Shown here: positions 2 to 8,427 of the stretch, one piece after another | Position numbering within the stretch: position 1 is the stretch's first letter | How the letters are laid out: each line of letters begins with the position of its first letter | IMG/VR virus record: IMGVR_UViG_3300005964_000044 | Location: 1 to 8,427 of that record | DNA: 8,427 bases | Direction: 5' to 3' (one strand) | Notes under the pieces: model-generated | The model's database searches: none | Seen by the model: the letters and a program-made list of their open reading frames with translations, nothing else | Told to the model about the DNA's origin: nothing | Made by a program: the position numbers and the translations under genes

Positions 2-952
2 GCATATATTCGCTCAACATTTTCGCCAAAATTTTACGCAGTTTTTGGAATTTCACTCTGGCTAATTTATGTATTTTCAGCACCGGTATTAGCTGACCTA
101 GTACTCCTAAATTTCAATATTCCAGCAATTGATAAGTTCTTTATTTCTGAAGTGCTTTTCGCTATTGCTTTGTTCAGTATAGTTAAAAAGTCAATTTATG
201 CATATTTAGTAGACGGAATTGCAATTTTACAAATAATTGTTTCTTTAATTCTGCCAATTTCAAGTTTTCATTTTCAAGTCCAAAATTTCACAATATCAAA
301 TACTTTACTTTCAGCTTTATTATTTGATTTATCCATGTTTTTATTTCTAAATGCAATTAGTTATATTGCAGGAGAAACGAAAAATGTGAATAAAAATATG
401 AAAATTGGTTATTTTGCAAGCTATTTAGTAGTTACCATATTAGCAATATTAGATAGTTATTCAAATCTAAATATATTATTTGTATTAATGCCAATGTGGT
501 TTATGAGTTATATTTTTATCACTTCCATGATACAAAGTCGTTTAGTGCAAAATTTAGCGTTTGATAGAATTCTTCCCGAAAAATTTGCAAAAATAACGCC
601 TAACGTTTTACTATTAATCTTTATTGCTGATACAATTGCAAATATCTTAGAAAATCTACTAAACTTTTCAATTTCCTTTGGCTTTGACGGTCTATTATTT
701 ATTTTCTGGAACTTTATAATTGTTAGTTTTGCATTTCTAAAATTAACAAATAAAAAACTACTATTTTCAATAGTGTTAACTAGTCTAATTTTACAGATCT
801 TCTTATTCTTCTATTTAGGTCTTCAAAATCAAGTATTCTATAACTTTGTAATTGAGGGCAATTTCATATACATAATATTAAGAATATTACTAATGCCAAT
901 TGTTGGAGGAATTATTTACTTATTAAGGAGGAAAATTATAAACGCTGAATAA
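2..952 (+). CDS. APC-superfamily amino-acid permease-like membrane protein (rudiviral ORF399-type), 5'-partial
   Basis: The frame of the listed 152..952 ORF is open back to position 2 (AYIRSTFSPKFYAVFGISLW...), so the gene starts before the window. It has many hydrophobic TM segments. It carries APC-like motifs: AYIR (end of GGxYxY) and SRLVQNLAFDRILPEKF (cf. SRxxxAxAxDGxLPxxF). It lies directly upstream of the TGT-like gene, as recalled for SIRV1/2. Confidence 0.75.
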   Translation, partial: AYIRSTFSPKFYAVFGISLWLIYVFSAPVLADLVLLNFNIPAIDKFFISEVLFAIALFSIVKKSIYAYLVDGIAILQIIVSLILPISSFHFQVQNFTISNTLLSALLFDLSMFLFLNAISYIAGETKNVNKNMKIGYFASYLVVTILAILDSYSNLNILFVLMPMWFMSYIFITSMIQSRLVQNLAFDRILPEKFAKITPNVLLLIFIADTIANILENLLNFSISFGFDGLLFIFWNFIIVSFAFLKLTNKKLLFSIVLTSLILQIFLFFYLGLQNQVFYNFVIEGNFIYIILRILLMPIVGGIIYLLRRKIINAE

Positions 953-954
953 AG

Positions 955-1878
955 ATGAAGTTGATTTTTGGCATTTCTAGTTCAAGAAGTTATTTTTTTA
1001 AAACGAATTTTCCAGTTCTAATTAATCAGCTGAGATTTAAAAGAAAAACATGGAAAAATGAGACTTGGATAGACAGTGGAGGCTATCAAATTATACTTCA
1101 CGGTCTAGAAATTTCGCCACAAGAAATAGTACAAAAATATAAAAGCATAGATGCTTATGCATTTTTTTCTCTTGATATTCCTAGCGTTTTTTCGCCAATT
1201 GATAAACGAAATTTTGAATATTTCGAATATCTATATACCAAAATTGAGTATATAGAAAAAATTATACCAGTTTTACATATTTATCCACTTCAAGAACTAG
1301 ATGAAGCTATTGATTTTTATAAACAATATACTTATTATTTCGCAATTGGCGGAATTGTAGCTTCTAGTAAAATGAAAGTTTTAATTTATACATTTCCATG
1401 GATATTTTATGTAAGAAAAAAAGTTCCGTATCTTCACGTTTTAGGAATGTCAGCTCCATATTTTTTACAAATTTTTAATTTTGTTGAAAGCATGGACACA
1501 GCAACTCATAGCGTAACAACTTCATTCAGGGAGATCTTTTGGTTTGATGGTTCTAGAAAATACGTAGGCAAAAGAAAAGCTAAAAGAATGAATGAGGAGG
1601 AAAAAGAGCAATTATTTGAATTCTTAGATAAGCATAATTTTCCATTTGAATATGATTTAAACAATAGGCATATTTTAGAACTAATAAACGCTTATATTCT
1701 ATTGTATCATAATTGGAAAATTAAGAATAAGTATACTGAATATGCTGATAAATTAAGAAAAATGGGATTAGATAGTTTGACAATTGAGTTAATTAGAAAT
1801 TACAAAATTGGAACAGAATTGCTAAAAGAGAAAAAGAATAAAAAGAAAGAAGAAGATGAATTAGAACTTGAGATATAA
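955..1878 (+). CDS. Queuine/archaeosine tRNA-guanine transglycosylase-like (TGT/DpdA-like) protein, rudiviral ORF306/310-type
   Basis: TGT barrel motifs appear in order: WIDSGGYQI, LDIP, IPVLH, AIGG, LHVLG, SMDT (nucleophile Asp position). There is no Cys-based Zn site. ATG is 2 nt after the transporter stop. Confidence 0.85.
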   Translation: MKLIFGISSSRSYFFKTNFPVLINQLRFKRKTWKNETWIDSGGYQIILHGLEISPQEIVQKYKSIDAYAFFSLDIPSVFSPIDKRNFEYFEYLYTKIEYIEKIIPVLHIYPLQELDEAIDFYKQYTYYFAIGGIVASSKMKVLIYTFPWIFYVRKKVPYLHVLGMSAPYFLQIFNFVESMDTATHSVTTSFREIFWFDGSRKYVGKRKAKRMNEEEKEQLFEFLDKHNFPFEYDLNNRHILELINAYILLYHNWKIKNKYTEYADKLRKMGLDSLTIELIRNYKIGTELLKEKKNKKKEEDELELEI

Positions 1879-2892: not shown

Positions 2893-2927
2893 AAATTTAA
2901 GTTGAAAAATGACAATTAAAAAATTAC

Positions 2928-3233
2928 TTAATAATATGTTTTCCAAATTAACAAAGCTATTAAATACCATAATTGTTCTTTTGGTATTTCGGCAAATATA
3001 CCGTTTTTAGCAAATTTATACGCATTATAAAGTCCTTCTATTTCATGTGTTATGTCTTCAATTTTCCATTTTTCAGGTTCCATAATTCCATTTTTTGTTT
3101 TAATTTCAATTGATGTTTTCATGTCCTTTATCCGTATTTTTAATTTATTATATTCATTATTTCCTTTCTTAACTTTTACTAATTGCATAGAAAAATTTAA
3201 TTCTAAATCCTTTACAACTTCTTCTTCTGTCAT
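2928..3233 (-). CDS. Hypothetical protein (~101 aa), candidate early/anti-defence gene
   Basis: Downstream of class-I promoter copy 1. ATG 3257 is too close to the TATA box to be transcribed. ATG 3233 (MTEEEV) has GGAGA upstream. Confidence 0.75.
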   Translation of the reverse strand: MTEEEVVKDLELNFSMQLVKVKKGNNEYNKLKIRIKDMKTSIEIKTKNGIMEPEKWKIEDITHEIEGLYNAYKFAKNGIFAEIPKEQLWYLIALLIWKTYY

Positions 3234-3263
3234 TTTTTCATCTCCATAAAAAAGCATATAATT

Positions 3264-3299
3264 TATGACAAATTTAAAAATGTCTCAAGTTTTTGATTT
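3264..3299 (-). promoter_or_regulatory. Class-I repeated early promoter, copy 1
   Basis: + strand tatgacaaatttaaaaatgtctcaagtttttgattt; the minus strand reads TTTAAA box then TTTGTCATA. Confidence 0.85.
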
Positions 3300-3360
3300 T
3301 CAAAATAATAAGTTAAGAAAAAGAAAAAAATTATAGATAAAAAACGATTAATTTAAAACT

Positions 3361-4083
3361 TTAATCAGCTTTATGACTTCTTGGCTTTGGATGCGTAATT
3401 AAATAATATTTATTTCCGCTTAGCATAACTGAATTTTCGCCATGATCCGGCGATTTCATAACAAATGTTGTAGAATTTTGAAGATATACTAAAAACGTAG
3501 AACCAGGCGTTGAAAATAAATCAGTAGCTAATACAGTATTTGAAAATTGTATTTCATGGTTGTAAATCGTTAGACTGTTTACATGATTTAAACTAAGATT
3601 TAAGTCATTATTTGGCGGTGGAACTTCATAGATTTCCAAATTTCCTTGATTAAACGTTAGATTAAATTGATATAGTTGACCTTTTACAAATATATCGTAA
3701 ATTTCTATTGAATAATTGCTATAACTAATAAGTAATTCTTTAGAACTAAGATTTAAAAGTTCTAGTTCTTTTAATATAATGTTTTTCATATCCTCTAAAC
3801 TTCTTGTAATTTTATTTCTTCTGTAAACTGATAGTATAGATGGTGCAGGTATGTAATATATACCTTTAGTTTCATCTAATTGACCATCAACATTTCTAAA
3901 ACATCCATTAAATGTTAGTCCTGACCTTGAAACATATTTTGAGCAATTTACATAATGATTTGAAATTAATGAAATTTTGGTAACTTGACCATTCATATGT
4001 TTTAACATAAAAACTTGTGGCAAATGAATTATTTGTTTTAAAATTTTAACTTCATACTTTTTTTGATCTTCAACTTGGGACAT
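3361..4083 (-). CDS. acrIIIB1: Anti-CRISPR AcrIIIB1 homolog (SIRV2 gp48-like; inhibitor of type III-B Cmr)
   Basis: Co-linear similarity to the recalled AcrIIIB1 sequence along its length: EVKxxKxxxxLPxVF, VNCxxYxSRSGxTxxGC, GIY, YSNYxIEIYDIxxKGxxYxFxL, QGxLxxYxVPxP, IYNH, TPG, SxDH, C-terminal HPxPR. The size (~240 aa) fits. Likely start is ATG 4083 after SD GGTG; GTG 4095 is the alternative. Confidence 0.9.
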   Translation of the reverse strand: MSQVEDQKKYEVKILKQIIHLPQVFMLKHMNGQVTKISLISNHYVNCSKYVSRSGLTFNGCFRNVDGQLDETKGIYYIPAPSILSVYRRNKITRSLEDMKNIILKELELLNLSSKELLISYSNYSIEIYDIFVKGQLYQFNLTFNQGNLEIYEVPPPNNDLNLSLNHVNSLTIYNHEIQFSNTVLATDLFSTPGSTFLVYLQNSTTFVMKSPDHGENSVMLSGNKYYLITHPKPRSHKAD

Positions 4084-4115
4084 ACGACCTGACACCTGTA
4101 AATGAAAATATGCTA

Positions 4116-4151
4116 TATGACAAATATAAAGTATTCGAAAAGTCTTGATTT
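4116..4151 (-). promoter_or_regulatory. Class-I repeated early promoter, copy 2 (acrIIIB1 promoter)
   Basis: tatgacaaatataaagtattcgaaaagtcttgattt, in the same 36-nt register as the other copies; it is the most diverged copy. Confidence 0.8.
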
Positions 4152-4169
4152 AAAAAAATATAAAAAGAA

Positions 4170-4454
4170 TTATTTTTCATAATATTCTATTGTAATTCTA
4201 TCAATTGGAAAATCATATCCTGTTATCATCTCTAAAGTTCTTTTTGGTTCCTTAACTAGTAAGCAAAATAATTCATCTAGATTTTGAACTCCAAAATCTT
4301 CATAAGTACTGCCACTAATATCTTTAACTTCTCTATTAATTTCAAAATCAATTAAACAATATTTACCTTCATAATCTGTAATAAAATAACTTTCTTCCTC
4401 AGATAAAACAATTCTAAAACCATAATTATATTTTTCAACTATTATATCAACCAT
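4170..4454 (-). CDS. Small acidic hypothetical protein (94 aa), candidate anti-defence protein
   Basis: SD GGTGA 8 nt before ATG. It starts 16 nt after the upstream stop, suggesting an operon. Very D/E/Y-rich and immediately upstream of acrIIIB1. Confidence 0.8.
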   Translation of the reverse strand: MVDIIVEKYNYGFRIVLSEEESYFITDYEGKYCLIDFEINREVKDISGSTYEDFGVQNLDELFCLLVKEPKRTLEMITGYDFPIDRITIEYYEK

Positions 4455-4470
4455 TTTTCCTTCACCTTGT

Positions 4471-4767
4471 TCAACAATTTATTATCCAATCTTTATTTCC
4501 ATATTTCTCTTCAAATTCTTTTATTTTTCTTTGTTTTAGTAATTTTATAATTTCTTTAACTTCTTCTTCAGAAATTTTCAGGCAATCCCTTCCATTATAA
4601 TGGCTAATTGTAATAGTAGACGTAACTTTGTCACGATATACTTTTTCAACTTCAACATAATATTCACCATCTTTTTTCACGATATAATAATAATAATCTT
4701 CAAACTTAGTTCCTACTTTTTTAGCGTAAATTATTTTTCTATTTTCTTGACTTGAACTTCCTGACAT
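4471..4767 (-). CDS. Small hypothetical protein (~98 aa), candidate anti-defence protein
   Basis: Downstream of promoter copy 3. The leader TTTACAGGTGAtggaatatATG mirrors the acrIIIB1 leader TTTACAGGTGtcaggtcgtATG, so the start is probably 4767 rather than GTG 4779. Confidence 0.8.
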   Translation of the reverse strand: MSGSSSQENRKIIYAKKVGTKFEDYYYYIVKKDGEYYVEVEKVYRDKVTSTITISHYNGRDCLKISEEEVKEIIKLLKQRKIKEFEEKYGNKDWIINC

Positions 4768-4799
4768 ATATTCCATCACCTGTAAAACGATTTATTCAT

Positions 4800-4835
4800 T
4801 ATGACAAATATAAAAATATCTTGAACTTTCGATTT
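4800..4835 (-). promoter_or_regulatory. Class-I repeated early promoter, copy 3
   Basis: tatgacaaatataaaaatatcttgaactttcgattt. Confidence 0.85.
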
Positions 4836-4856
4836 ATAAAAAAGAAAAAAATAATA

Positions 4857-5321
4857 TTAATTTTTGACAAATTCGATTTTATAATTTTTCTTTAAGAGAT
4901 AATACACTTTGAAATAGACAGGATCGGCATGACTGATAATAGATTCTGGTATCATCTTCAGTAAAGTAATAATATCTTCTGGAACATTATATTCATCACC
5001 ATAATATATGATTATTTTATTTTCTTTAACTTCAAACCTATGCCAAGAATATGCTTTTTTATAATCTATAATATAATTATGAGAACCATTATTCCATTCA
5101 TCATATGCTATATACTTTATATTATCATTATAAATAAAAATTACAGAACTAACATATCTATCATTTACGGTATTTCTTAATTTTTCAAATAGATATTCCT
5201 TTAACTCTTTATAATTTATTTTCTGCACTTCATCCCATAGCTGAATAATTTCATATCTTAAAATCTCTAATTGATTTATTATTTGATTTATTTTCTCTAA
5301 TTGTTGATCAAATCCACTCAT
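4857..5321 (-). CDS. Hypothetical protein (154 aa, N-terminal coiled coil), paralog A
   Basis: SD GGTGA before ATG and promoter copy 4 upstream. Visibly homologous to the 5496-5969 product. Confidence 0.85.
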   Translation of the reverse strand: MSGFDQQLEKINQIINQLEILRYEIIQLWDEVQKINYKELKEYLFEKLRNTVNDRYVSSVIFIYNDNIKYIAYDEWNNGSHNYIIDYKKAYSWHRFEVKENKIIIYYGDEYNVPEDIITLLKMIPESIISHADPVYFKVYYLLKKNYKIEFVKN

Positions 5322-5351
5322 CTTTACTTTTCACCAAATCAATTTACGTTA

Positions 5352-5387
5352 TATGACAAATTTAAAAATGTCTTTAGTTTTCGATTT
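5352..5387 (-). promoter_or_regulatory. Class-I repeated early promoter, copy 4
   Basis: tatgacaaatttaaaaatgtctttagttttcgattt. Confidence 0.85.
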
Positions 5388-5429
5388 ATCGATTTTTTTA
5401 AAAAATAGAATTATTATTTCAGATGTGAA

Positions 5430-5482
5430 AAAAATTATTGAAAAAAATAGAAGATAATGAACATGAAAATAGGAAGTTAAAA
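5430..5482. repeat. 53-bp exact direct repeat, copy 1 (terminator-like on the minus strand)
   Basis: aaaaattattgaaaaaaatagaagataatgaacatgaaaataggaagttaaaa is identical to 6078-6130. Confidence 0.95.
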
Positions 5483-5495
5483 AAGAAAGAAAAAA

Positions 5496-5969
5496 TTATT
5501 TTTGAACTTTAATGAAATTTATTTTATATCCTTTTTTCAATAGTAAATATAATCTCACAAATCCTTCATATGCCCAGCCAAGATTTGATTCTTTCATTAT
5601 TTTTAATAAATTCAATAAGTTATCTGAAAGATCATATTCCGAAAGATACATAAGATTTATAGTATATTTATCAGCATCAACATCATATCTATCCCAATAA
5701 TATATTTTATTCTTTATGATAAGTAAATTTCTTGAACCACTATGTTTTGGTTTAGATATATATTTTACATCATTATCATTCACAAAAATAACGCTATTTA
5801 CATCATTAACATTTGTAATTTCAAATAAATTATCAAAAAAATGTTTTATATCTTCCTCGTATATTGTTTCTGATATTTGTTTTTGTAACCTTTCTACTTC
5901 TTGTTTTAAATGTTCTAAACCATTAATTATTTCATCTATTTTTTCTAATTCAACTTTATTTTTATCCAT
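5496..5969 (-). CDS. Hypothetical protein (~157 aa, N-terminal coiled coil), paralog B
   Basis: The listed GTG at 5981 is part of the SD (GGTGAaagaaaaaATG), so the start is ATG 5969. Promoter copy 5 is upstream. Confidence 0.85.
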   Translation of the reverse strand: MDKNKVELEKIDEIINGLEHLKQEVERLQKQISETIYEEDIKHFFDNLFEITNVNDVNSVIFVNDNDVKYISKPKHSGSRNLLIIKNKIYYWDRYDVDADKYTINLMYLSEYDLSDNLLNLLKIMKESNLGWAYEGFVRLYLLLKKGYKINFIKVQK

Positions 5970-5999
5970 TTTTTCTTTCACCTAAAACAACATGTACTA

Positions 6000-6035
6000 T
6001 ATGACAAATTTAAAAATGTCTTTAGTTTTCGCTTT
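6000..6035 (-). promoter_or_regulatory. Class-I repeated early promoter, copy 5
   Basis: tatgacaaatttaaaaatgtctttagttttcgcttt; 5998-6031 is identical to 5350-5383. Confidence 0.85.
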
Positions 6036-6077
6036 ACGAATTTCCTAAAATGTTAGTATTAATATTTGAAACATGAG

Positions 6078-6130
6078 AAAAATTATTGAAAAAAATAGAA
6101 GATAATGAACATGAAAATAGGAAGTTAAAA
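6078..6130. repeat. 53-bp exact direct repeat, copy 2
   Basis: Identical to 5430-5482 at an offset of 648 bp, the same offset as promoter copies 4 and 5. Confidence 0.95.
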
Positions 6131-6178
6131 TATAAAATTATAAAAATAAAATAAAATTAAGGAAAAAAGATAAAAAAA

Positions 6179-6406
6179 TTATTGAGTTTGTTGAAATTGA
6201 ATTTGTTTTTGAACTAATGAATTGAATGTTTTAAAAGCGTATTCATAATCATAACCATGATAATAGAAATAACGGTTTGTTAATGATATTTTGAAAACTG
6301 CATAACGAGAATTTTGACAGCAAACACATTTCGCTAATACAACATTTCCAACTTGTTTTACTGTTTGAAATTCGTGATACCTTATCCCTATAACTTGAAA
6401 TCTCAT
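6179..6406 (-). CDS. Small hypothetical protein (~75 aa, CVCC motif)
   Basis: Class-II promoter upstream, AGGT before ATG 6406, and a long T-rich tract after the stop. Confidence 0.7.
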   Translation of the reverse strand: MRFQVIGIRYHEFQTVKQVGNVVLAKCVCCQNSRYAVFKISLTNRYFYYHGYDYEYAFKTFNSLVQKQIQFQQTQ

Positions 6407-6432
6407 ACCTATCAATTATATATATGTAAAAA

Positions 6433-6453
6433 CTTATATTTAAACTTTTCTCT
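6433..6453 (-). promoter_or_regulatory. Class-II promoter (BRE+TATA), copy 1
   Basis: Minus strand AGAGAAAAGTTTAAATATAAG; 21 bp identical to 6959-6979. Confidence 0.85.
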
Positions 6454-6541
6454 ATCTTTTTACCTTTTCATTTTTCGATTTCTTTAACGCTAAACATGTT
6501 AACTCTCAATTTGTGCATATCTTGAATTTATATTTAAAAAC

Positions 6542-6598
6542 TGAGAAAAATTAGACATAAAGATAGATAATAAGAAGAATGAAACTAAAAAGCTAAAA
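6542..6598. repeat. Diverged third copy of the intergenic 53-bp block
   Basis: 42/57 identical, ungapped, to 6074-6130 by manual alignment. A-richness inflates the identity. Confidence 0.55.
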
Positions 6599-6670
6599 GA
6601 TAAAGTTAGAAAAATAAAAATGAACTAACAAAGAGAAAAAAACGTTAACTTAATACAAATAAAAAAATTA

Positions 6671-6931
6671 TTAAGATTTAGGAAGTAATAGATAAACGTT
6701 ATCGCCTGCATTTATTTTCACAATAAAATTCTGCTTTAACCATGAAATATATTTTAAACCACAACCAGGTATTGGATTGTAGAAACATGTTGTTGAAACC
6801 TCATGCCATTCGTAATGTGGACAATCCTGAATTATCATTCCGCCTCCAACATCATATTTTTCCCCCAATCTAACATTACAATTTGAACAATAATATGTAG
6901 TAACATTTCCTTCTATTTCTCTTTTCAACAT
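6671..6931 (-). CDS. Small Cys-rich, putative zinc-binding protein (~86 aa)
   Basis: CSNC...CPH...C...C pattern. The listed 5' extension overlaps the promoter; SD GGTGA precedes ATG 6931. Confidence 0.75.
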   Translation of the reverse strand: MLKREIEGNVTTYYCSNCNVRLGEKYDVGGGMIIQDCPHYEWHEVSTTCFYNPIPGCGLKYISWLKQNFIVKINAGDNVYLLLPKS

Positions 6932-6958
6932 CTTTTCACCAATATACATATCACATTC

Positions 6959-6979
6959 CTTATATTTAAACTTTTCTCT
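6959..6979 (-). promoter_or_regulatory. Class-II promoter (BRE+TATA), copy 2
   Basis: Identical to 6433-6453. Confidence 0.85.
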
Positions 6980-7195
6980 CAATTTTTACATCTCTATCTT
7001 TCGCTCCTATTCTGCTAATTATCAATATAATGTATATGCCAAATCTGCTTCATGAATATTTTAACTTCCTAATTGCTTAATTTCATAATATACTAATCAT
7101 ATAATATGCTATCTTCTCAATTGCATAATTTCATAATTTATTAATTCTCCTTACAATTTCCTCCATAAAATACTGAGATAAATTCAAACTGTATA

Positions 7196-7276
7196 CAGCA
7201 TCTTCTGTTGAATTGAAAGAAAAAAAGAAACTATATCTCCGTGATAAGTCTCAAATAATTGACTAAAAATTCAAGG
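7196..7276 (+). CRISPR. Possible solitary or degenerate CRISPR repeat unit(s)
   Basis: CAGCATCTTCTGTTGAATTGAAAG (7196-7219): the last 20 nt match the recalled Sulfolobales repeat (...ATCTACTATAGAATTGAAAG) at 17/20. A much weaker repeat-like string lies 34 nt later at 7254-7276. Confidence 0.3.
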
Positions 7277-7660
7277 AAAATTTATGAATATACTAACTTC
7301 ACAATTACATAATTATATAATTATATATAACATAAAACATTTTATTATTTTAACTCTCAAACACGCAATTTTATAATTTTTAAGCTTCTCAACTTCCAAA
7401 GTTTTTAATTTATAAATTCACGTTTAGTTTTTCCACGCGACCAGCTTCCAAATCCAAAACTTTGTGAAAACAAGAACTTGGAACTGGAAAACTAAAGTCG
7501 CGGGTAAAAACGTAATTATATAATTAAAAAATTTGGGAATTGAGAAACTAAAGAATTATAAAATTTGCTAATTTGAAAAATAAAAAATAATAAAAAATAA
7601 AAATAAATAAAAATGGAGAACAGTCTACTCACTAATTCTATCAACTTTTGGCTCTTCAAG

Positions 7661-7676
7661 TATTTAAACTTTTCTC
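7661..7676 (-). promoter_or_regulatory. Class-II promoter core, copy 3 (no convincing gene downstream)
   Basis: GAGAAAAGTTTAAATA, 16 bp identical to copies 1 and 2. Confidence 0.6.
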
Positions 7677-7740
7677 CAAACTTTGAATTCTGATCAAACA
7701 AACTCCAAAAAATCCAACTGAATATAATATAATAATTTTG

Positions 7741-7884
7741 GAATATGTTTAGTAACTTTTTAACTTTAAATTGAGGTTTTGGTTTGCTAGAATTAATAAT
7801 TTAAATAAATTATGAATATGTTTAGTAACTAAAAACTTTAAATTGGAGTTTTGGTTGCCTCAGATTTATAAATTATAATATTAT
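7741..7884. repeat. Two-copy imperfect tandem repeat, period 73 bp
   Basis: gaatatgtttagtaact...aactttaaattg..gttttggtt at 7741 and 7814. Confidence 0.85.
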
Positions 7885-7971
7885 AGTTAGTAGTTATTAA
7901 TATCCACAAATTAACATTTATTACAAATTTCCAAAGTTTGAATTTGCAAATTTTATATTACAAATTTCACC

Positions 7972-8363
7972 AAATGACAGATTAATTGTAATTTAGGAAT
8001 TTAGAAAATTAGTATTTTTTATCATAGTTGTAAAATTATTTGGAAATGTAGAATTAATTGGAATTTAGGAATTTCCAATTTTTTAACTTTTTTGCAGAAA
8101 ATGATAGATTATTTCAAATTTAGGAAATTAGGAATTTACAATTTTTCTCATTTTTTGCACAATTTACGCAAAATGACAGATTAATTGGAATTTTGGAATT
8201 TTCAATTTTTTGCACCGCTCCAATTATTATTTGGAGGTGTAGAATTAATTGGAATTTCCAATTTATTGCGAAAGTTGGGAAATTTGCGAAAAAAACGAAA
8301 AAAACGAAAGAAATTGGAATTTTCAATTTTTTGCATTAGTTGTGAAATTTTCGCAGAAAATGA
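7972..8363. repeat. Rudiviral terminal (ITR) repeat region with AATTTAGG-type motifs
   Basis: 8117-8137 matches the conserved rudiviral terminal 21-mer AATTTAGGAATTTAGGAATTT at 20/21, and 7990-8010 at 19/21. Recurrent blocks: aaatgacagattaattg (7972, 8171), tgtagaattaattggaattt (8047, 8238), ttggaattttcaattttttgca (8193, 8314). Confidence 0.8.
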
Positions 8364-8427
8364 AAAAAACTACAGTTCCCTAATTAAGCCTTTGCAATTG
8401 CAGAATATTAACTAGGTATTTGATGTA

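Follow-up and report, generated by a model that had tools for sequence, protein, structure and literature searches.

Putative terminator-promoter modules and the exchange of anti-defence gene cassettes at a usarudivirus terminus

In the Sulfolobus islandicus rod-shaped viruses (SIRVs) of the genus Usarudivirus, represented by SIRV4-11 and the isolates V3, V60 and V65, small terminal genes that are themselves poorly conserved share an upstream sequence containing a B recognition element (BRE) and a TATA box, and repression of these genes by the winged helix-turn-helix (wHTH) protein Aca8 has been proposed (Bhoobalan-Chitty et al. 2024, Nat Commun 15:3699; PMC11065993). That study scanned only the 100 nt upstream of start codons, and the words 'recombination' and 'terminator' occur 0 times in its text. 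In T4-type phages, promoter early stem-loops (PeSLs) place terminator and promoter motifs between the small, non-essential genes of hyperplastic regions, and recombination between them produces the insertions, deletions and replacements by which close relatives come to differ (Arbiol et al. 2010, PMC2839356; Comeau et al. 2014, PMC4122927). Here we describe an intergenic module that invites comparison with both systems and that is repeated on either side of a predicted anti-defence gene (ADG) in the metagenome contig IMGVR_UViG_3300005964_000044 (Ga0081529_120053), the entire 8427 bp of which form the window analysed. We consider it likely that such modules, each combining a probable terminator with a promoter at the terminus of a usarudivirus genome, act as crossover points for gene cassettes, and that patchy, recent conversion made parts of two of them identical in this virus.

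The window is the variable terminal region of an archaeal, Yellowstone-type rod-shaped virus of S. islandicus belonging to the genus Usarudivirus, because it matches the genome ends of SIRV4-11, V3, V60 and V65 at approximately 85% DNA identity over 38-52% of its length, has strong PHROG matches and encodes homologs of ADG and anti-CRISPR (Acr) families. Its G+C content is 20-29%. From about 2900 to 7000 every gene is on the minus strand, and the order from the terminus inwards is Z, Y, X2, X1, a two-gene unit, an AcrIIIB1 homolog and a member of ADG.01, with family names following Supplementary Data 1 of PMC11065993. X1 (4857-5321, minus strand, 154 aa) and X2 (5496-5969 within an open reading frame (ORF) at 5496-5981, minus strand, 157 aa from the ATG at 5969) both belong to the ADG.18 family of predicted anti-defence genes. 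The assignment of X1 draws on a match to phrog_12890 (3.5e-70), tblastn, a protein tree and the published ADG.18 listing, and that of X2 on a PHROG match, the tree and the gene call. Y (6179-6406, minus strand, 75 aa) is an ADG.08-family gene by its 55% identity to SIRV9 gp02, the ADG.08 listing and the gene call.

Two blocks of sequence recur around X2 at an offset of 648 bp. Block A (5350-5383 and 5998-6031) is identical at 34/34 positions and block B (5430-5482 and 6078-6130) at 53/53, and the exact identity of each ends at these borders. The middles that separate them (5384-5429 and 6032-6077) are both 46 bp long and agree at 29/46 positions (63%, against a random expectation of 0.31). When the window was shuffled 200 times with dinucleotides preserved, the longest exact direct repeat was 15 nt on average and in no case above 19, compared with the 53 observed. 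A third, diverged copy of the trailer module (B', 6526-6642, minus strand), downstream of gene Z, is 73% identical to 6058-6174. On the plus strand, 7056-7071 is an exact inverted copy of the 16 nt at 6118-6133 on the minus strand, the 5' edge of block B, for which about 0.06 matches are expected by chance; it marks the start of a plus-strand promoter-like repeat (7055-7097, 7103-7145). X1 and X2 share only 37% amino-acid identity. The original prediction, made from the letters of this stretch, had reported the two blocks and their common offset, a diverged middle of equal length, neighbouring paralogous ORFs of high divergence, a diverged third block near 6542-6598 and the 16-bp inverted piece, and all of these features were recovered.

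The long intergenic regions share an order of parts that, read on the minus strand, leads from a T-rich trailer through a conserved middle and the AAATCGAAA motif to a promoter and a leader. The AAATCGAAA motif occurs three times in the window against 0.4 expected. The promoter part consists of a purine run and a TATA box with GTC directly after it, and lies 21-47 nt upstream of five starts; in the short leader that follows, a Shine-Dalgarno-like GGTGA usually precedes the start codon. Block A coincides with this part. Its first copy (5350-5383, minus strand), with a BRE-like purine run, TATA box and GTC, is the predicted promoter of X1 (core 5352-5366), and its second copy (5998-6031, minus strand) that of X2 (core 6000-6014). 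The 15-mer core of this first promoter type is found upstream of five minus-strand genes in the window (3264-3278, 4116-4130, 4800-4814, 5352-5366 and 6000-6014) and in 15-22 copies in each related genome, core genes included. GTC after the TATA box is the reported promoter signature of SIRV1/2 (review PMC5569661). Because of its copy number, its presence at core genes and its fit to that motif, the TATA+GTC core can be read as a general rudiviral promoter. The TATA box of block A also sits within a near-palindrome, GACA-N10-TGTC (5356-5373 and 6004-6021, minus strand), one arm of which is the known GTC motif while the second arm is present in some modules only. A bacterial sigma-70 reading of block A was dropped, the virus being archaeal.

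A second promoter type, with a purine run and a canonical TATA box and without GTC, is predicted to drive Y from 6437-6467 (minus strand) and has many copies in the relatives (records L001-L010), at least seven of them in SIRV8. Further copies at 6963-6993 and 7661-7691 would drive Z and a terminal small ORF. This type shares the AAATCGAAA motif with the first, at a different distance from the TATA box.

When 17 modules from 10 genomes were aligned, conserved sub-blocks extended up to approximately 125 nt upstream of the TATA box. Of block B, the 3' half is part of this shared module core, and the 5' half is found in a subset only, namely twice in the window, in SIRV8/9/10 and in the independent metagenome contig L017. 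Block B falls outside the published range, which was limited to 100 nt upstream of start codons, and belongs to a module of about 150 nt whose conservation exceeds those 100 nt. The anti-defence genes are arranged as putative single-gene transcription units separated by homologous modules of approximately 150-200 nt. This places the window alongside the regulatory sequence described in PMC11065993, from the same virus group and with the same families (ADG.18, ADG.08, AcrIIIB1 and ADG.01): a predicted strong archaeal promoter lies upstream of single small genes, five shared copies occur in the window, and Acr and ADG families lie at the terminus. Non-coding sequence that is conserved above the coding sequence was therefore, as far as the promoter half is concerned, already published in 2024 (PMC11065993). 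That account differs from ours in being without cassette insertions and deletions that leave chimeric modules, patchy conversion within a genome and 12-bp phasing.

The two genes have separate ancestries, as do the two intergenic regions. A tree built from 16 ADG.18 proteins joins X1 to its orthologs SIRV9 gp53 and SIRV8 gp57 (86% aa), and X2 to a protein of 85% identity encoded on the independent metagenome contigs L016 and L017. The two clades are set apart by long, well-supported branches, each with orthologs in other viruses, and X1 and X2 are accordingly anciently split paralogs rather than recent duplicates. A simple tandem duplication followed by uniform divergence was rejected, given that the clades split long before the viruses did and have orthologs elsewhere. 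The intergenic regions are mosaics. Intergenic region 2 (IG2, 5982-6178) follows the ADG.08-ADG.17 region of SIRV8/9/10 up to the promoter core and then an L017-type X2 leader; its middle (6032-6077, minus strand) has the canonical module form, with 40/46 positions in common with the corresponding region of SIRV9. Intergenic region 1 (IG1, 5322-5495) follows the L017 X2 trailer into the middle and then the SIRV9 X1 promoter and leader, so that the 5' part of its middle (5384-5429, minus strand) resembles the former and the 3' part the latter. The positional ortholog of IG1 in SIRV8/9 is without block B and has only a degenerate T-rich stretch. On these comparisons, the two modules flanking X2 are shown to come from different ancestors.

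Against this background the identity of the blocks requires an explanation of its own. Measured against positional orthologs, block A agrees at 30/34 and 28/34 positions, block B at 49/53 (the ADG.08 trailer of SIRV8/9/10) and 47/53 (the trailer of the X2 ortholog in L017), and the middles at 40/46 and 36/46. Between viruses, therefore, the blocks are 82-92% identical and the middles 78-87%, whereas within this genome the corresponding values are 100% and 63%. The two copies in the window share their departures from the respective orthologs (4-7 sites). Since the blocks are identical within the genome yet differ from their orthologs, while the middles track their orthologs, we infer that two patches of 34 and 53 nt were recently homogenised by homologous recombination between non-allelic copies, or by gene conversion, with mismatches resolved in patches, and that the 46-nt middles would have escaped conversion and kept their own ancestry. 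That the middle stayed unconverted agrees with what is described for recombination in Sulfolobus, where mismatches are resolved in short patches without coordination (PMC3367456). At three of the four sites where block B differs from the SIRV9 copy it matches the X2 trailer of L017, a hint that the converted block was donated by the X2 trailer. Among 94 pairs of ADG-upstream regions in 12 genomes, this is the only pair with at least 30 exact nt within one genome, the next longest match being 22 nt.

Purifying selection could in principle achieve the same without recombination, if A and B were immutable functional sites such as a promoter, a terminator or an operator. The blocks do lie within a module conserved across viruses and gene families, and published work ascribes regulatory similarity within a genome to shared regulation (PMC11065993). 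Selection alone is nevertheless an unlikely explanation: between orthologous modules the blocks are no better kept than the middle, both window copies share the same departures, and no other genome has such identity between non-allelic modules. Moreover, a closely related strain, represented by contig L021, retains two differences in the IG2 copy of block B (51/53), a first hint of the pre-conversion version. The suggestion in the original prediction that either recent homogenisation or strong selection was at work can be refined, in that both apply: the module is conserved across viruses, and the blocks are identical within this genome but diverged from their orthologs.

In relatives, whole cassettes are gained and lost at such modules. 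SIRV5 has the order Aca8, module, ADG.18, module, acrIIIB1, whereas SIRV7, a near-identical virus of the same spring, goes from Aca8 through a single module to acrIIIB1, a net difference of 648 bp. The SIRV7 module is identical to the first of SIRV5 over more than 90 nt and thereafter to the second, up to the start codon, as expected of an in-register crossover in mid-module. SIRV10 is without the 552-bp X1 cassette of SIRV9, the switch lying near the promoter core, and V60 and V3 are without the 588-bp ADG.18 cassette of V65, the switch lying at the AAA(T/C)CGAAA motif. In all three pairs the intergenic region of the empty site (in SIRV7, SIRV10 and V60) is an in-register chimera of the two flanking modules. 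Replacement is seen as well: in L017 the X2 ortholog keeps both modules, with a zinc-finger-like 91-aa gene before it and an unrelated 98-aa gene after it instead of Y and X1, and in SIRV8/9/10 the module after ADG.08 is positioned to drive the antitoxin-like ADG.17, where the window has X2. By these alignments the modules are shown to be crossover points for the gain, loss and replacement of whole cassettes in relatives. Two proposals of the original prediction thereby find support there, namely that crossover between the blocks would excise, duplicate or swap a promoter-gene-terminator unit (units of 648, 552 and 588 bp with chimeric empty sites) and that different genes should occur between the same blocks (the L016/L017 X2 ortholog has other neighbours). 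In the present genome we predict that the identical blocks are efficient, ready substrates through which the 648-bp X2 unit could be lost or duplicated. Cassette blocks also appear to move between the two genome termini, because the ADG.08-module-ADG.17 block is at the left end in SIRV9 (L001 1022-1647, plus strand) and SIRV8 (L004 2069-2694, plus strand) and at the right end, inverted, in SIRV10 (L005 31130-31755, minus strand), and the ADG.08 gene of the window is likewise at the right end.

The other half of the module is its trailer. Trailers contain 2-5 runs of five or more T per 120 nt, compared with six such runs in 3069 nt of coding sequence. The first copy of block B (5430-5482, minus strand) is the 3' trailer of X2 and places T7 runs 49 and 62 nt past its stop codon; the second copy (6078-6130, minus strand) is the 3' trailer of Y. 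Block B is therefore described here as a T-tract-rich 3' trailer that is probably the oligo-T terminator of the upstream gene. U-tracts are archaeal terminator signals (PMC8716108), and the trailers, if they terminate, would act as U-tract terminators of this kind rather than as hairpins. Sense-strand RNA folds of both intergenic regions were no better than those of shuffled sequences (z +1.10 and +0.23); a weak fold is present on the plus strand of IG2 only (z -1.9), formed by a TTCCTA/TAGGAA inverted repeat that is absent from IG1. An Rfam scan, with a permissive E-value included, returned nothing at the blocks and one sub-threshold microRNA match at 7447-7488. Of the roles that the original prediction raised for the 53-mer (terminator, small RNA or protein-binding site), a probable terminator is supported by the density of T-runs, and the absence of an Rfam match or a sense-strand fold speaks against a small RNA. 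A comparison of block B with the SvtR consensus, made by eye only, gave no convincing match. Together, the parts suggest a mechanism in which the T-tract trailer would end the upstream gene, and the conserved middle, AAATCGAAA motif, BRE/TATA+GTC promoter and leader would start the next.

It is conceivable that block B has a product or ligand of its own, be it a small RNA, a peptide from a 10-codon antisense ORF, or an operator recognised by Aca8 or some other regulator. The mini-ORF has an open frame in both window copies (5437-5469 and 6085-6117, plus strand), in SIRV9 (L001, approximately 1318-1350, minus strand) and in L017 (approximately 1615-1647, minus strand), and would encode the peptide M/V/L-R/K-K-I/V/N-I-E/D-K-N-R-R; TTC(C)TATTTT occurs twice in block B, about 32 nt apart, and the 3' half of the block belongs to the conserved module core. 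We regard this as improbable. The start codon of the mini-ORF varies (ATG, GTG or TTG, and CTG in the third copy), and so it is probably a by-product of A-rich sequence, in which a 10-codon open frame is unremarkable; the Rfam and sense-strand folding results argue against a structured RNA. Such a role would in any case be compatible with conversion and exchange of terminator-promoter modules.

The original prediction had also allowed for an assembly artefact. In that case the assembler would have merged two similar repeats into a single consensus, or linked two strains through a k-mer common to both. The window does consist of one short-read metagenome contig, and the exact X1 protein was found on it and on no other contig. 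The repeat was reproduced, however, in a European Nucleotide Archive (ENA) MEGAHIT contig (k141_23101 of ERZ27249292, the L021 introduced above), which is 99.4% identical to window positions 7066-5347 and was assembled at k=141, longer than either block. It runs from Z and Y through IG2 and X2 into IG1. Both of its copies of block A are exact, block B agrees at 53/53 positions in IG1 and at 51/53 in IG2, and its portion of IG1 is already the X1-type promoter region. It ends 3 nt past block A of IG1, where the module meets the X1 leader, and the independent confirmation extends to that point; the stop could reflect strain heterogeneity in that sample, with different genes following the same module. 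Tandem ADG.18 paralogs also occur in the cultured isolate V65, where two such genes lie close together with one other small gene between them. Taken together, these observations make an artefact very unlikely.

Several points weigh against our preferred explanation, in which terminator-promoter modules serve as cassette crossover points and two of them were recently converted. We infer promoter, terminator and recombination activity in this genome from its sequence. The role of block B is the weakest part, given that its 5' half occurs in a subset of modules only, and it might instead be a regulatory site. An Aca8 gene was not found in the window by tblastn with SIRV9 Aca8 as query, the contig comprising 8.4 kb of one terminus. 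Past block A, the join between IG1 and X1 is seen in one metagenome assembly only, and L021 is independent as an assembly, though not necessarily as a sample, its ENA sample being compared with that of the Joint Genome Institute (JGI). Finally, in the other 11 genomes non-allelic modules are without long identical blocks, and homogenisation is hence an event of this lineage, not a general property.

The least probable alternative is a dedicated, integron-like system in which the blocks are sites for a virus-encoded site-specific recombinase: repeated sites do flank single promoter-bearing genes in an array and the indels are cassette-sized, but the three mapped crossovers fall at different positions (the middle, the AAA(T/C)CGAAA motif and the promoter core), no recombinase domain was found in any window ORF, a Holliday junction resolvase is the only such gene listed in the annotations of the relatives, and the sites are without conserved secondary structure. 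The varying crossovers and the lack of a recombinase in the window point to general homologous recombination between modules. Hence, of the 'recombinational gene-cassette system' first envisaged, cassette exchange stands and the dedicated system does not. The array does resemble integron cassettes in consisting of single genes between repeated sites that are gained and lost as whole units; it differs in having no integrase, no structured attC-like site, a promoter for each unit and variable crossover points.

The closer functional parallel is with PeSLs, as had been anticipated by an analogy with the shuffling of early-promoter cassettes in T4-like phages. As with PeSLs, breakpoints of insertions, deletions and replacements fall within the modules (SIRV5/7, SIRV9/10 and V65/V60), and in function the analogy is sound. 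It does not extend to membership. PeSLs have sigma-70-like promoters as well as stem-loop terminators, whereas the modules described here have archaeal BRE/TATA+GTC promoters and unstructured oligo-T trailers, are longer (approximately 150-200 nt), delimit units quantised in steps of 12 bp, and belong to a linear, hairpin-ended archaeal virus. The modules work like PeSLs but are not members of that class.

The quantisation is apparent from the spacing of the promoters. Adjacent type-1 cores in the window are separated by 852, 684, 552 and 648 bp, each a multiple of 12 (648 being 54 x 12). Across 12 genomes, with about 11 non-orthologous segments, the spacing of adjacent ADG promoters is a multiple of 12 in 20 of 23 cases, and the exceptions involve a different promoter type, with sums that are again multiples of 12 (681+1167 and 1072+812). 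Two ADG.18 cassettes of different subfamilies, the SIRV5 type (L003 33269-33917, L006 and L007) and the X2 type (window 5366-6014; L017 1059-1707), both measure exactly 648 bp from core to core, with genes and intergenic regions of unequal lengths. A census of indels by gapped blastn with lax gap penalties was uninformative, producing spurious small gaps in AT-rich DNA, and an anchor-diagonal test was used instead, in which net length differences between unique exact anchors are scored as multiples of 12. Length shifts were multiples of 12 in 174 of 179 cases among SIRV5, 7, 8, 9 and 10 (ranging from 12 to 2976 bp), in 44 of 52 between the window and its relatives, and in 41 of 48 among the Icelandic SIRV1, its variant XX and SIRV3. 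A 12-bp phase common to every promoter was rejected; within a terminus it is only the homologous ADG modules that are in phase. Counted by hand from the record ends, with termini that may be incomplete, the phase of the ADG promoters differs among V3, V60 and V65.

Indels of 12 bp are given as a peculiarity of rudiviruses and lipothrixviruses in the work that PMC4390879 cites (Peng et al. 2004; Vestergaard et al. 2008). Our results share with that description a variation in length by 12-bp units, reproduced for SIRV1, variant XX and SIRV3; they differ in that the published indels lie 'generally within ORFs', whereas here the rule embraces whole cassettes, replacements of up to about 3 kb and promoter spacing. 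In SIRV2, AFV1 and SFV1, each capsid-protein dimer occupies 12 bp of A-form DNA (PMC5517147, PMC6105669). It may be that length changes in multiples of 12 reflect packaging, with genome length permitted to change only in capsid-dimer steps, and an alternative is a mutational mechanism with a 12-bp register. With subscription journals excluded, no paper was found that links 12-bp indels to the capsid-dimer footprint or extends the rule to cassettes or promoter phasing. If length does change in steps of 12 bp, only module pairs spaced by a multiple of 12 would recombine to give viable genomes, and cassettes moved by recombination between modules would necessarily be in phase. It is tempting to speculate, albeit tentatively, that the anti-defence genes form length-quantised cassettes within an in-phase array of modules tuned to the nucleocapsid lattice, an archaeal-virus counterpart of PeSL shuffling in T4 that would allow fast turnover of the repertoire, the identical blocks being the footprint of a very recent exchange.

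The remaining features of the window fit around this array. Z (6671-6949, minus strand) is similar to SIRV9 gp56. The two-gene cassette (4170-4776, minus strand, comprising 4471-4776 and 4170-4454) lies behind the type-1 core at 4800-4814 and is a 684-bp insertion relative to SIRV8/9. The AcrIIIB1 homolog (3361-4083, minus strand, 240 aa; type-1 core 4116-4130) is 86% identical to SIRV9 gp52, which is listed as AcrIIIB1, and the ADG.01-family gene (2928-3257, minus strand; type-1 core 3264-3278) is assigned by phrog_4746 and the ADG.01 listing. Pfam, PADLOC and PDB profile searches of the ADG.18 family and its neighbours gave nothing significant. To our knowledge rudiviruses have no terminase, and the RefSeq annotation 'terminase small subunit' of a gene in SIRV4-11 is misleading for that reason. 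According to PMC11065993, this gene encodes the 55-aa wHTH protein Aca8 (for example L001 2899-3102, L002 32820-32987 and L004 3982-4149).

At its inner end the contig begins within a permease-like gene (152-952, plus strand), followed by a gene resembling queuine tRNA-ribosyltransferases of the DpdA/TGT type (955-1878, plus strand) that is conserved in SIRVs. The two tandem plus-strand promoter-like repeats at 7055-7097 and 7103-7145 are related to 1909-1951, the predicted promoter of the plus-strand gene at 1965. They lie within 533 bp (6983-7515) that contain no ORF of at least 40 aa, and a 44-nt inverted repeat is found at 7367-7410 and 7522-7565. Direct-repeat arrays occupy 7762-7875, 7965-8211 and 8247-8375, and because 7964-8093 aligns at 81% with the terminus of Acidianus rod-shaped virus 1, the stretch 7760-8427 is probably the inverted terminal repeat of the genome.

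For four of the findings we could find no published precedent: the trailer half of the module, the cassette exchanges with their mapped crossovers, the patchy conversion seen in this genome and the phasing of cassettes by 12 bp. Anti-CRISPR and other anti-defence genes set the host range of archaeal viruses and turn over fast, and the route of this turnover in rudiviruses has not been spelled out before. Recombination between homologous terminator-promoter modules, with crossovers mapped in cultured isolates, supplies a concrete mechanism. The 12-bp length steps correspond to the footprint of a capsid dimer and represent a testable constraint that would tie genome evolution to virion architecture. 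The full module, of about 150 nt plus its trailer, together with the spacing in multiples of 12, could sharpen the prediction of anti-defence genes in metagenomes and could also help in designing viable deletions and insertions for SIRV genetic systems.

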